From Diadema antillarum (lineage: Eukaryota), in assembly GCF_040938485.1 (NCBI RefSeq), contig NW_027271550.1, positions 1,116,001-1,180,000 of the forward strand: a stretch of 64,000 bases of DNA, given 5' to 3'. Numbering within the stretch: position 1 is the first letter of the stretch; every line of letters begins with the position of its first letter. Below the pieces are notes generated by a model. The model was not told the origin of the DNA, ran no database searches, and saw only the letters and a list, made by a program, of their open reading frames with translations. The position numbers and the translations under genes were made by a program. Shown piece by piece: positions 1,896 through 27,969 of the stretch.

Positions 1896-2259
1896 ATGGG
1901 CTTTTGCTGTTTTTGCTGTTGTGCTCACAAAGGAAGGGGCAAGTCAAAGGGTGGCAGGCGTGTGACGAGCAGCAGGCTCTTGGGGGTGAAGGCGTCGGGC
2001 GGCTACATTACTACCACCGACATCACCGACTCGGAGGGAGCTGCCCTCCTGGGCCATCAGAATCCTCGCTATGCAAAGAGGACTTCCAGGCCCGAGGGCC
2101 GTAATCAGAAGCGAGGACGGAGTGTGTCAACTCCTGTCCGACCCCACATGACGGCCATACGCATTTTGCCGCGCGACACCTATGACTCGACGGACAGCGA
2201 CTTCTCGAGCGCCTCGAGCCACGCCACCCGTGGCAATCGGAGAAGATTCGCTATGAGAG
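1896..2259 (+). CDS. SYT14/SYT16: SYT14/16 alternative first coding exon 1 (MGFCCFCCCAHK...RRFAMR)
   Basis: GC-rich ORF in AT-rich DNA; ATG just after a tgcag acceptor-like site; AG|GTAGTA donor at 2259 is phase 1, matching acceptor 27851. If unspliced the ORF stops at 2285. Confidence 0.65.
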
Positions 2260-2427
2260 GTAGTACCCTCGATGTTACAATGTAATGAGCTTCTTGTATG
2301 CTGCCTCAAACTCATCAATAAAAGTTGATGACAAGTTTTTGGAAAATGTTATTTCAAGTCATAGGCATTAACTCTATATTCGGTGTTTTATATAGAAATG
2401 TGCATGATTTACCCTTCTGCCCATCAG

Positions 2428-3003
2428 TTAAAGGACAAGTCCACCTTCATATACATACGGATTGAGAGAATGCAGCAATATTAGTAGAATACATCAGTGA
2501 TAGTTTGAGGAAAATAGGATAATCCATTCAAAAGTTATGAATTTTCTAAGTATCTGCGCACTCACTGGCACTGGATGAGAAGACTACCACAATGTATGAT
2601 GTCACATGCGTGCAACAATATACAGTGTAAGGAAAATAAAAGGAGAATTTCATAAAACTTTACTTTTTTAATGAAGTGCACATTTCTTCGACTTGTTACT
2701 GATGTATGATAAGGATAACATCATTCCCCCTGCCTTCTGAAAGAGAGAAGTTGAGTGTTCTTTTGTTATGCGAGAAAAATGGAAATATGTTGATTTTCTT
2801 AACTCTTTCTTTATATCGTTGTACACATGTGACATCACAAGCTACAGTAGTCTCTTCATCTAGCAGTGACTGAGCAGAAACTTTGAAAATTCATAACTTT
2901 TGAACGGAATGTCCGATTTTCCTCAAACTCTCACTGATGTGTTCTACTTATATTGCTGCATTCAATCAACCCACATGTCTATGAAGGTGAACTTGTCCTT
3001 TAA
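2428..3003. mobile_element. TTAA-AGG MITE (Kolobok/T2-like), copy 1
   Basis: TIRs TTAAAGGACAAGTYCACCTTCATA; related copy at 17886-18462. Confidence 0.85.
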
Positions 3004-3953
3004 GCAATTTCAGATATATGCATGATTGCAGTGAAGAGCATTAGATGATTATGATTGAAGTTGAGGGAAATCAATCCATGACTCTGCACTTTTTACTTCA
3101 TTGCTATATATAATTACACACATGCCTTCATTGATTTTCACAGTCCTGTTACCCCCTGATTTATATATATTTAAAAGTGAAAAGGTAAAAAAACAGAAGA
3201 ATAGTGTTTGTGTCTAGAAAAAGCACTCCACGTTCATCAAATTGTATGTAGTTAATTCACATACCATTTTTCCTCTGTGATTGATGTTTCATGTTTTGTT
3301 TTTAAGCACTGGGTTTTGGGGCCTGAAATGCAGACCCAGTGCATGTGATCATACCATGGACCTACTGTAGGTCCATGCTCATATACTTATTTTGGGAGTT
3401 TTCTACTCTCACATTAGCTGTTGGCACTATAAGAAGTAAATGTCCAAATTTGGTCAGGCTGCAATTAACTGCTCCCCTCTTCACCCCTCACCTGAAGGGA
3501 GAATAGTAAATGAAAGTTAGGTGTCTTTATCTCTACCTTGCTTGATTTTCTTTTGCTTTCATAATCCCCCTCTTCCAATTGATAATGCAGGGGTATCAAT
3601 GACTGCTTGACACGGGTATAAATGCCAACTTTTAAGGCTATAGATACACTGTGTAACATGTTTGGCTGTGCCTGTTGCCAAAGGCCATTTTATGGAATAC
3701 CATACTTGTCTGTATGTCATTATTCTGTAGGATCGCTCCCTCCCTCTCTCTCTCTTTAGATTTTGGTAGAACTTTGCCCCCACATTTAAGAACTCAGTTG
3801 AAAGGCATTTCAGGGTACCATTATGTGCAGTGCCACCCTTGAGGGGTATTCATTGTGTGACACTGTGCAGTTGTAACCACATGCATTCAATGTATCTGTT
3901 ACCAAAGGCCATATCGTTGTCTGTTCCCATAATCTCCTTGTTGTAGCCATCAC

Positions 3954-24400: not shown

Positions 24401-27400
24401 GCCTATTCCAAACAATCATACCAGAGTTGCATATCTGCTGGTTCACACACTTGTGGTTGGTGTTCAGGCATGACAAGTTCTGCATACTGGGTAGTGGTGA
24501 TCACAACAAACAAATATGTAAAATAAGGCTGTTGTTTTGGTACATGGAAGAGTTAAAATTGTCAGCTAATTCAGCTATGGCACTGGGATTTAGATGTTTA
24601 TAATGACATACCGATAACACAGGACCACTGTCATTTTATGCTCCATTCAGCCTTTAGCCTTTACTTCGAGTACCACTCAGAATTCAAAATTTTGAGAAAG
24701 AGAGCTACAAAGTTAGAAAACAAAAAGGACTCAAAAGAGATTTTTTAGCTCACAGACATGTAATCACAGAAGAAATACAATTTTGAAATATGAGCTGTTC
24801 CCCCGAACATGAAATGAATGAAGATATTTCAGTCACTGCATACAAATGTAATTGATGACACATTTATTGCAAATTCATTGCAACCTCATATGCCTCTACA
24901 TACTGTATATCTTCATTGCATCTGTCGTGCACATTATGTTTGTTCTGAGAACCTATAAAAATCTTCCTTTCTATTTCGTATTCAAAAGTTAGTGAATGTT
25001 TGGTGTCATACACTATTAATGCATCAGAATTATTCATAAAGTGCCAATGAATTGTCAGCAGTATGTACATACAAGATAAGTACATATATGTATATGGATA
25101 TATAACTGTACAGAGGAGCAAAACTGTTCATTGTATGTATCTGATGTCGTGACCTTAAGTTGATGCTCTTTCTTTTCAGAACTGATGGGACAATTTGCCC
25201 ATTGAATATGACTGTAGGCCAAATATCAAAATGCCATGTTTCCATTGCTTGTATCAAAGAAGAAGAAAAAGAAAAAAAAAGAAATCCACCCACATGTAAA
25301 AGTAGGTCTGTATAGTCCTGCTGTGCAGCAGTATCCATTGTGTTGTTTATGTGTTGTGCAAATCCTATTTTGACTGATTACCTGAGTAGATGTATACACA
25401 CAAGCACTTATTATGAAAAAAAAAACTAAAAGTATGCCTCACATGACAGCACATTCCTTTGATGAATGAACCTGATAAAGATTGTTGTCTATCATATTCA
25501 GACATTACATGCACCTCGACAGTTACAATACGTGCAATAGGTTACATGTTTCGTCAAGTTCCGCGGCATGCATTTCATAAGACTGAGTGATCACGCATAA
25601 TGCATTTAACATGCAGATCTCAACTAATCTACATGTATGCTGAGCTATGCAGGTGCACTCAAAGCTTGTACAGTTCAGTTACACCACATTTGTGTCTGTT
25701 TCTAGAGTTTTCATTTGAACATACTCTTGTGATTATTTGAGGATGATAGGAGTGTGGTCCCGTGGTTGATTTTTGGGCACAGAAATATATACTTTTAGAT
25801 GTGGGTTCAGCATTATTCCTTGCTAACCAGAATCAAAAGTTAATTACATCAATTGACCAATGAGGTTATGTTAGTTTAGGAGTATGATTGTCATTCAAAA
25901 CTGTAGTATAGCCTACTCCCTTGTAGGGGATGTGTACCATACCATGCTTTTAAGTACATTGTAGGCTTTCCTCCATCTATGTGGATCTTTTAACAGGTAT
26001 GATATTGTCATAGTGCTGAATGCTGGACTGATGCTACATGGAGAGATACATGGAGAGAAAGAGATAACACCTTTTATTGCCACACTGGAAGGCTGGTAGT
26101 CTAGAGCATCATTTTGCTCAATAGTTTCAAAGCCAGAAATGACATAACACAAGGGCAGATCCAGGAATTCCATAAAGGGGAGGCGCCTTTACAAAATTAA
26201 AGGGGGTGCATGTGCCCCCCATTTCTTTTTATTTCCCTTGTCTAAACAAAAATAAAGAGGGGGCCTGCGCCCGGTGCGCCACTGAAACATGTACAGCGTA
26301 CAATATCTATGCACATTCACAAAGTAATAGTTTCACATCTTGGGAAGACGCATCCTTTTCCTCGAGGCAAGACAATAAAGCATCAATATTGTTGCCTCAT
26401 TTATTCAACCCATTGATGATTTTGCTACAACACACATTTCCCATAGGCACCTGCCCGAGTATACTCGGGACTCGTCCTCAACGGGCTGAGGCATTTAGTG
26501 GATATTTATATGAATACATTTTTACCTTGAGTGGGGTGTCATTTTGACCTTAGATTCAAATATAGATCATTTCATGTGACATGCATTATGTGTGTAGAAA
26601 TTGCATCAAAGTGTATACTGGTAGATGTGAATGTTACTAACCAACTTTTTATTAATTGTAAATCAATTAACCACATCTCATGACAATCTTCTCTTCTACC
26701 AGATTTTTTTTTAACTTCATTGGCATGCCGTAGGAGGTTTTTGTAATGTTAAATAATCTGGTGTAGGTTGCGTAGGTTGTGTTTCAAACGTGAAAGTTTT
26801 ACTATTGGATGTACATGTACCGGTATGCATTGTTTCATTAGAATTGCACATGGTAAGTCTGCACTTCATAGCATTGCACACACACAGCGGTCATGTGAAT
26901 TGTGATAATGGGTGCCTAATTGCAATGCTGGTTACTCTTGTATTTTATGGAGTGTGCAAGTAAAGGTGAGCGTTGAACCAAACTCTTTTTTAACAAAGAC
27001 AGTGTGCTTCCGTTCAGTTATCATGTTGGCCATGCGTCGAAACCCTGCGGAATGTACTTGTATGCTTTGCTCAGTGACAACAGACATTGATTTGCGTCTA
27101 CACTTGGTTTCATGCTTTGATATACAAGAGTTAGAGGAAAAAAGGAGTCATTGGAAGTTTATGTAAAACATTTGTCACATCACAGTGTTCACCATTGAGC
27201 ATTGGACTGTTACAGTATCTACTCTGTAGGGCTAGTCAATTGTGCATAATATTGTGGAATTCTTGCAAATATCCGTGTCGAGAACAAACACACACACACA
27301 CCACCACCACCACCAAAAAAAAAAAATGGTGATTAACTTTGTCACAGATGTAGTACTAATAAGTTACTTTTGCAGGAATTTTTGTTTTGATCTTGTATTC

Positions 27401-27850
27401 TTTTCACTTTTTTGGAGATGAAGATCTCGTATAGAAATCCACACATATCAATTAATCCAGAGAGGCTGCAAAAGTCTGACTGCTTGCCATAATTATGTGC
27501 AACAGCAAAATTGAGATTAATCTTTTTGTCCTATGGTGGAGGGTGCCCGGAGTGTTGAAGGAAATTCACGATAAAGCAATGAGCCAAGATTTGAATTTCA
27601 CATTCACGAGAACCAATAGCCAACATCAAATCGAATTTAACTGAAAATCTACTAAAACTTGGAGAGCCTGCAAAAAAAAAGAGATGGTTTTTGACCTGTA
27701 TTTCTTCAAAAGTTATATGTATGAGGAAGGTATATCAAACTTATTCATGGAATATCCACCTTTCACCTGGTTATTCAATCTCTATGCAGTGAATGCGTGA
27801 TAGGTTTCTTGCAGCCATGTACAATTTTTTTCTGTATGTCTTCCCTCCAG

Positions 27851-27969
27851 GTATCAGGGCAGAGGATGGAGACGATCAGGGCTCCTACGACCTCGATGAT
27901 GAGGGCCCAGTGCAATCAGAGATGTTGGACGACATGCCCCTCGTTGATGATGAGGAGGACATCGTAGAG
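27851..27969 (+). CDS. SYT14/SYT16: SYT14/16 acidic linker exon (first common exon)
   Basis: ttccctccag acceptor (phase 1) and GAG|GTGAGC donor (phase 0); encodes [10 protein letters not shown]...EDIVE. Confidence 0.85.

Follow-up and report, generated by a model that had tools for sequence, protein, structure and literature searches.

The question raised by this locus is whether one synaptotagmin gene can supply a single pair of C2 domains with several different N-termini, and with them several different membrane addresses. The DNA concerned, hereafter the window, is a stretch of 64,000 nucleotides (nt) from the sea urchin Diadema antillarum (NCBI RefSeq assembly GCF_040938485.1, contig NW_027271550.1, positions 1,116,001 to 1,180,000 of the forward strand). 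It holds most of a single SYT14/16-type gene of this species, in which four candidate exons, termed leaders 1a to 1d, sit in a 40-kb intron between the 5′ exons of a transmembrane (TM) leader and the first constant exon, which starts at 27851. Most probably, alternative 5′ coding exons in this intron give one C2A–C2B module interchangeable N-terminal membrane-targeting heads. Confidence in the use of the individual exons is high for 1a, 1c and 1d, and moderate for 1b.

The structure of the four leaders, all on the + strand, is simple and common to them all. Leader 1a, or the a-type leader (1896–2259), consists of 121 codons plus 1 nt, opens MGFCCFCCC and ends at the donor GAG/GTAGTA; leader 1b (6498–6714) has 72 codons plus 1 nt, opens MKCCCC and ends at TAG/GTGCCT; leader 1c, or the c-type leader (11539–11842), has 101 codons plus 1 nt, opens MRMLVCCCDGGVSDTEALLL and ends at GGG/GTACCG; and leader 1d, or the d-type leader (21125–21446), has 107 codons plus 1 nt, opens MGSLLCLKLCPGFLPFFG and ends at the GC donor ATG/GCAAGT. 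A preliminary description of this DNA had assigned to each leader a phase-1 donor, which is the phase found in all four, with the correction that the donor at 21446 is a GC and not a GT donor; a GT close by, at 21451, is in phase 2 and breaks the frame. Since all four leaders end on a phase-1 G and the exon at 27851 requires phase 1, the codon formed across the junction is always GGT (Gly). In other words, the locus displays a row of 5′ exons in tandem, all with start codons of their own and with donors that fit one constant acceptor. Joined to the five constant exons, the leaders give uninterrupted open reading frames (ORFs) of 468 (1a), 419 (1b), 448 (1c) and 454 (1d) amino acids (aa), the lengths claimed in the preliminary description, and the claimed start codons at 1896, 6498, 11539 and 21125, opening MGFCCFCCC, MKCCCC, MRMLVCCC and MGSLLCLKLC, are all found. 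Two donors had been proposed for 1c: that at 11842 is kept in the related species Diadema setosum, whereas that at 11848, use of which would give 450 aa, is lost there. The Cys-cluster leader ORFs are more than the product of chance; across both strands of the window only nine ATG-initiated ORFs of at least 50 codons have at least three Cys among their first 12 residues, and five of the nine are the three Cys-cluster leaders.

Whether such reading frames are coding is best approached through the corresponding locus of D. setosum (L002). Between the two Diadema species the four leaders are 92–94% identical, and the ATGs, the Cys clusters and the donors, including the GC donor of 1d, are all kept. 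The mean identity of the locus is 87% (0.866, standard deviation 0.075, over aligned windows of 120 nt), and most of the long alignments in the introns fall at 75–88% identity with many gaps. In D. setosum leader 1a is intact with one 12-nt in-frame deletion; 1b is intact and free of gaps, its ATG, Cys run and donor being kept; 1c has one 3-nt in-frame insertion or deletion (indel); and 1d is free of gaps and identical in its donor region. The ratios of nonsynonymous to synonymous change (dN/dS) are 0.67 for 1a, 1.26 on 18 changes for 1b, 0.50 for 1c and 0.22 for 1d, all from the small counts of 18–21 changes per leader exon; that of the first constant exon is 0.05. A control set was formed from open stretches of at least 90 codons, on either strand of window positions 1–27800, which lie clear of the leaders and can be aligned to D. 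setosum for the greater part of their length. The frame is intact in D. setosum in 0 of about 15 of these controls, all of which carry frameshifting gaps or in-frame stops, and in 4 of 4 leaders. The proposal that the four ORFs are coding exons with kept Cys clusters is thereby borne out, inasmuch as frame, ATG and Cys cluster are intact in D. setosum, and these comparisons support the view that the four leader ORFs evolve in the manner of conserved coding exons. Frame and ends are kept while the residues are weakly constrained, a pattern common in short targeting heads with disordered linkers behind them.

The same alignment reveals non-coding blocks at or near 95% identity directly upstream of 1d (20121–20881, + strand), and similar blocks of about 95% identity upstream of 1b (6221–6361) and 1c (11021–11281), all of which are candidate promoters or 5′ untranslated regions (UTRs). 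Further intronic blocks of about 95% identity lie outside the modelled exons, at 16961–17121, 17681–17881, 22321–22601, 23901–24101, 24721–24881, 30561–30681 and 37481–38241; these blocks may be enhancers or other non-coding elements. The ORF at 22243–22620 is frameshifted in D. setosum.

The leaders in the window are not the only N-termini of this gene. A longer stretch of the D. antillarum locus (L001, in which window position 1 is position 32083) supplied the offset between the two sets of coordinates, the positions of the exons of the annotated protein and the sequence 5′ of the window. It had been remarked that no TM exon is visible in the window, which is correct for the window itself; TM exons do exist 13–14 kb upstream of it, at L001 18257–18436 and 19320–19484, where they are exons of the annotated protein. 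Indeed, the annotated Diadema isoform X1, the first coding exon of which lies at L001 10001, starts with a classical TM leader, MAGIDG...IPLAALIFLGVIFIFLTFLVLMFMYLNKMACFANCGGCPC.... Nearer to the window, ca 2.0–2.5 kb before it (L001 29579–30119), is a leader of a further kind, MAFDEFSQFIGNFFSS..., here called MAFDEF-type, of 180 codons plus 1 nt with the phase-1 donor ATG/GTAAGA. It has neither a TM helix nor a Cys cluster, and it is intact, and unannotated, in both Diadema species. It is orthologous to the leaders of isoforms X1 of the sea urchins Lytechinus variegatus and Strongylocentrotus purpuratus, and its start resembles, by eye only, the TM-less N-termini of vertebrate SYT16/SYT14 (MASQDVQNFFQPLSSWI..., MAFFKNFQQNL...). 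With a TM leader and a MAFDEF-type leader upstream of the window, the array therefore consists of six alternative N-terminal modules, and the gene is not TM-less. The interpretation given in the preliminary description is on the whole right, though incomplete in that these two leaders fall just beyond the window. A hidden TM exon within the window was rejected by homology mapping and by hydropathy, the maximum 19-residue Kyte–Doolittle score being 1.28 among the four leaders vs 3.07 for the TM leader. A reading of leader 1a as a cassette exon, entered in frame after the TM exons, was rejected as well, because D. setosum lacks the one AG that would suit it.

Indirect evidence that the leaders are spliced to the exon at 27851, as put forward in the preliminary description, comes from other urchins and is strong for 1a, 1c and 1d. 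The RefSeq models of L. variegatus, Lytechinus pictus and S. purpuratus splice leaders of types a, c and d to the same first constant exon; 1b has no annotated counterpart. In tblastn leader 1a matches its homologues, the leaders of L. variegatus X4 and S. purpuratus X2, at E 7e-11 and 7e-10, and leader 1d matches its own, those of L. pictus and S. purpuratus X3, at E 5e-7 and 2e-5, the alignment with S. purpuratus reaching 21439. Leader 1c has in common with L. variegatus X6 (MVARSCLLCCCGDFEGDEDLCL) and S. purpuratus X4 (MVAKLFLLCCDGDSDSNEDQHL) its position between the a- and d-type leaders, its phase and its terminal G, together with the motif L-x-CC(C)-D/G-x-acidic-L-x-L. A small profile hidden Markov model (HMM) of the c-type leaders, set against shuffled leaders, ranked 1b first and 1c ninth, so that no homology in sequence between the c-type and either 1b or 1c was established, and the link of these two to the c-type rests on position, motif and phase.

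The L. variegatus locus (L003) may be read in parallel with that of Diadema. Its TM exons are at 14388 and 15430 and an optional exon is at 21028, followed by the MAFDEF leader of isoform X1 (26673), the a-type leader MGGKMSCCCCFCC of X4 (28757), the c-type leader MVARSCLLCCCGDFEGDEDLCL of X6 (32972), the d-type leader MTCLPCLKFCPGF (39537) and the constant exon (48807), which all annotated isoforms join; the annotated isoform with a d-type leader is the L. pictus protein. The order of the leaders, TM, MAFDEF, a-, c- and d-type, is the same as in Diadema, and the three donors read at this locus, those of the MAFDEF-, a- and d-type leaders, all end in a phase-1 G. The 175-nt L. variegatus c-type exon and its donor were predicted from the genome before isoform X6 (XP_041469139) had been seen, and X6 matches the prediction exactly. 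Beyond urchins, RefSeq contains multi-isoform models with TM, MAFDEF-like, a-like and d-like heads from sea stars, a brittle star and feather stars, for example Patiria X3 (MGKKSSLCCCC), Asterias X4 (MGKAGSLCCCC), Patiria X8 (MCWKFLSLCPPFG) and Antedon X5 (MGCLSCCANF). The layout is therefore pan-echinoderm and already present in the databases. Among 261 screened proteins, TM-less Cys-cluster N-termini were confined to those of echinoderms, apart from that of one protein (P0096). A search with the L. variegatus X4 leader alone matched only S. purpuratus X2 and the product of an unspliced Logan contig.

The part of the protein which all of these heads would share is well defined. Assembled from consensus splice sites, the constant part is encoded on the + strand by a first exon at 27851–27969 (GIRAEDGDD...; entry phase 1, exit phase 0), a C2A exon at 32599–33009 (Pfam C2, E 4e-11), an exon for the linker and the start of C2B at 36165–36363 (end in phase 1), a middle C2B exon at 36967–37082 (Pfam C2 over 36969–37082, E 9e-5) and a last C2B exon at 39793–39990 (Pfam C2 over 39793–39987, E 1.5e-3), which ends ...RWHALLES before the stop codon; a run of N at 36378–36551 falls within the intron after the 36165–36363 exon. 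The 347 constant residues are 100% identical to XP_071485094, the D. antillarum synaptotagmin-14-like isoform X1, and 99.4% identical to the D. setosum protein. In a full-library protein search with the C2A exon, and a second search with its best full-length match, the top matches were all synaptotagmin-14 or -16. The Pfam C2 matches place the tandem C2A and C2B of the SYT14/16 subfamily on the constant exons, and these domains, the top protein matches and an alignment to SYT1 uphold the SYT14/16-type identity given in the preliminary description. In the alignment to SYT1 C2A (2r83), most of the Ca2+-binding Asp positions of SYT1, the numbering of which we take to be established, are replaced; the segment ‘ldmggtsdpy’ is aligned to ‘eeggassyr’, and the segment ‘ydfdrfskhd’ is likewise aligned to a 10-residue stretch of the Diadema protein. 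Such a ligand-poor C2A would be as expected for the Ca2+-independent SYT14/16 group. Near-identical synaptotagmin-14-like proteins occur in RefSeq from two D. antillarum assembly contigs (5.46 Mb and 1.89 Mb), and the drift in offset between the window and L001 is small (32079–32082), which fits haplotype copies or assembly versions.

Several observations weigh against the use of the four leaders as alternative 5′ coding exons. By a crude consensus matrix all four of their donors are weak in comparison with those of the constant exons, and 1d depends on a GC donor. The high dN/dS of 1a and 1b means that their residues are weakly constrained. The likeness of 1c to the c-type leaders is marginal in sequence and does not beat that of shuffled controls; 1b is without an annotated counterpart in any species. 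The RefSeq isoforms of both Diadema species have the TM form only, and no RNA sequencing runs are listed for window positions 1890–11850, a stretch which is mostly intron. A protein search with the 101-aa leader 1c alone gave no match, a result of little weight, as the length window of the search excludes full-length isoforms.

It is on leader 1b that these points bear most, and it is the weakest of the four in its support. Its likeness is to 1c, at 45% identity over 22 residues, and weakly also to the c-type head of S. purpuratus X4, which suggests that it may be a duplicate of the c-type exon made in the Diadema lineage. An alternative is that 1b, by itself or along with 1c, yields no protein isoform and is a stretch of conserved non-coding or regulatory DNA in which an open frame has simply not yet been lost. 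The dN/dS above unity, the weak donor and the lack of both an annotated counterpart in any species and a match in the protein database are what such a stretch would present; set against them, the ATG, the CCCC run, the frame, the donor and the phase-1 terminal G of 1b have all been kept, with no indel, amid introns rich in indels, and the annotated c-type leaders of Lytechinus and Strongylocentrotus occupy the same relative position and have in common the Cys run and acidic motif. On this balance we consider the non-coding alternative unlikely, and retain coding use of 1b and 1c.

If the leaders are indeed alternative coding exons, what would their heads do? All four contain a Cys cluster within the first ca 15 residues (up to residue 15 there are 5, 4, 3 and 2 Cys in 1a, 1b, 1c and 1d, respectively) and no helix of TM grade, which together are features of N-terminal Cys-cluster anchors such as those of Syt17 (B/K) and GAP-43. 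In the head of 1a, Gly2 and five Cys among nine residues precede a polybasic run (net charge +7 over the first 30 residues), which is followed by an ExxxLL motif (EGAALL). In 1b and 1c the Cys run is followed by an acidic stretch, with DxxxLL in 1c, and the head of 1d is hydrophobic and Cys-bearing (CLKLCPGF). A simple pattern search, with no statistics attached, places an acidic dileucine-type motif, [DE]xxxL[LM], behind the Cys cluster in the a-type heads of urchins and sea stars (EGAALL, ETSALL, EGTALL, ETTPLL and ENTPLM) and in 1c (DTEALL); the places are window positions 1896–2040 and 11539–11600 and the N-termini of proteins P0001, P0151, P0177 and P0004. The motif has the form of adaptor-binding sorting signals and, as a lead only, suggests endosomal or lysosomal addressing.

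Runs of adjacent cysteines at cytosolic N-termini are classical sites of S-acylation. This general knowledge of N-terminal CC motifs and the precedent of the B/K protein (Syt17) are the grounds on which the Cys clusters of the leaders are taken to be putative S-acylation sites, which would steer the protein to different membranes; Gly2 of 1a and of 1d may in addition be myristoylated. The B/K protein is a TM-less synaptotagmin in which the N-terminal Cys cluster is needed for membrane targeting (Fukuda & Mikoshiba 2001, as cited in PMC10404969). By this analogy, confidence in lipid anchoring of the leaders is moderate.

The clusters might instead bind metal, form disulfides or have no function, in which case the TM-less isoforms would be soluble. 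The fast evolution of the residues after the Cys cluster is consistent with such an account, which is nevertheless doubtful given that both urchins and sea stars retain the Cys runs at the very start of their a- and d-type leaders, as do urchins at that of their c-type leaders. The known use of such a cluster by B/K, and the standing of cytosolic CC runs as acylation sites, speak on the same side. Lipid anchoring therefore remains our preferred reading of the clusters.

The scheme which emerges for the locus as a whole is one in which each leader, with its own ATG and phase-1 terminal G, would join the exon at 27851 in Diadema so as to form the same Gly codon, and in which the choice of 5′ exon would place a different membrane-targeting head on one C2A–C2B effector. 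The heads on offer would be a TM helix, a MAFDEF-type head with neither Cys cluster nor TM helix, and four TM-less heads with Cys in their first 10–15 residues. The choice might be made by promoter or by splicing; each leader is presumed to be a first exon with a promoter of its own. The contrary arrangement, in which a single shared exon, non-coding or upstream, is spliced to only one or another of the leaders as second exon, and the N-terminus is selected by splicing and not by the promoter, would find its AGs for in-frame phase-1 entry just 5′ of the ATGs of 1a, 1c and 1d, and would then also count against the leaders as first exons, but is very unlikely in view of the loss of the candidate AG before 1a in D. 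setosum, of in-frame stops 24–108 nt before each leader ATG, and of the conserved non-coding blocks directly 5′ of 1b, 1c and 1d, which are as expected for promoters or 5′ UTRs.

A broader proposal can be put forward, as a possible and frankly tentative one: that an anchor-swapping SYT14/16 locus is older than the split of the echinoderm classes, that its six heads (TM, MAFDEF and lipidated Cys) send the protein to different compartments, and that 1b was added in Diadema by duplication of a c-type exon. The associated hypothesis is that the isoforms differ in membrane address and not in the function of their C2 domains. The function of SYT14/16 is itself poorly understood; syt14 serves as a pan-neural marker in the embryos of sea urchins and sea stars (PMC10396339). 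For Diadema, the gain is five unannotated coding exons, four in the window and one upstream of it, and up to five isoforms of a gene for which RefSeq models the TM form only.

The remainder of the window contains other features. Downstream of the synaptotagmin gene, on the + strand, is a gene for Nop53, a ribosome biogenesis protein (50141–61112), with Pfam Nop53 matches in the exon at 50141–50281 (E 3e-8) and within 60690–61112 (E 2e-5). The stretches 8165–8415 and 31738–31941 are copies of a repeat, both strands of which give the same 25-residue reading; it is a palindromic or inverted-repeat element with at least two intronic copies. At 62084–63200 there are repeated units with near-identical ORFs, EPHDPFSPNLAGSIPRGLGTQFVK... 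on the + strand and APLKSLPHPPPLG... on the − strand, which probably belong to a repeat family; one of these ORFs (62339–62524) gave no match in Pfam.

It remains to place the array among systems already described. Novelty with respect to Craxton's collection of Syt genes, which the preliminary description had left to be checked, is not upheld, as TM-less N-terminal variants of S. purpuratus Syt16 were listed there in 2010. Craxton (2010, BMC Genomics 11:37, Additional file 30) gives S. purpuratus Syt16 var1–var3, of which var2 and var3 have alternative TM-less N-termini, and cites transcript evidence of their expression. The last residues of var2, KNSL-FQG, agree with those of the S. purpuratus X4 c-type leader, KNSLFQG, and the end of var3 as read by machine, SESVILS, agrees with the d-type leader of S. 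purpuratus X3 (SESVILES) if one dropped letter is allowed. Three of the four Diadema leaders (1a, 1c and 1d) thus correspond to isoforms annotated in other urchins, two of them on Craxton's list of 2010, and 1b may be a new one. With the phenomenon already both in the databases and in that survey, the present work refines what is known and is not a discovery. On the S. purpuratus variants Craxton (2010) states only the loss of the TM region, with no discussion of Cys clusters or lipid anchoring, and among the papers searched none was found to discuss the Cys clusters of SYT14/16 as lipid anchors.

The closest likeness is to the SYT14/16 gene of S. purpuratus and Lytechinus, which is the same gene, with the same phase-1 entry into the constant exon and with a-, c- and d-type leaders beside the TM and MAFDEF leaders; Diadema differs in that its TM-less leaders are unannotated, in its extra leader 1b, in the GC donor of its d-type leader and in the start of that leader, which is MG and not MT. 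Vertebrate SYT14 and SYT16 are alike in their tandem C2A–C2B and in having N-termini with or without a TM region from different 5′ exons. The rule that SYT14 has a TM helix and SYT16 lacks one, from which the preliminary description had set out, is in this regard an oversimplification: forms with and without a TM region are known for vertebrate Syt16 and TM-less transcripts for human SYT14, and these arise from different 5′ exons (Craxton 2010). The B/K protein resembles the TM-less isoforms in lacking a TM region and in having an N-terminal Cys cluster, by which B/K is held on membranes, but it is the product of another gene and has a single, fixed N-terminus. The likeness to the clustered protocadherin and UGT1A loci, also drawn in the preliminary description, holds for the row of tandem ATG-bearing 5′ exons which face one constant acceptor and one constant set of exons, and does not hold for the origin of the leaders, which are not paralogous copies; as tandem duplicates they were rejected, there being no significant similarity among them in DNA or protein save the weak 22-residue match of 1b to 1c. 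Moreover, there are here only six modules, and these are short targeting heads and not whole domains. In other words, the Diadema array would work like the protocadherin and UGT1A loci, by analogy, without being a member of their class.

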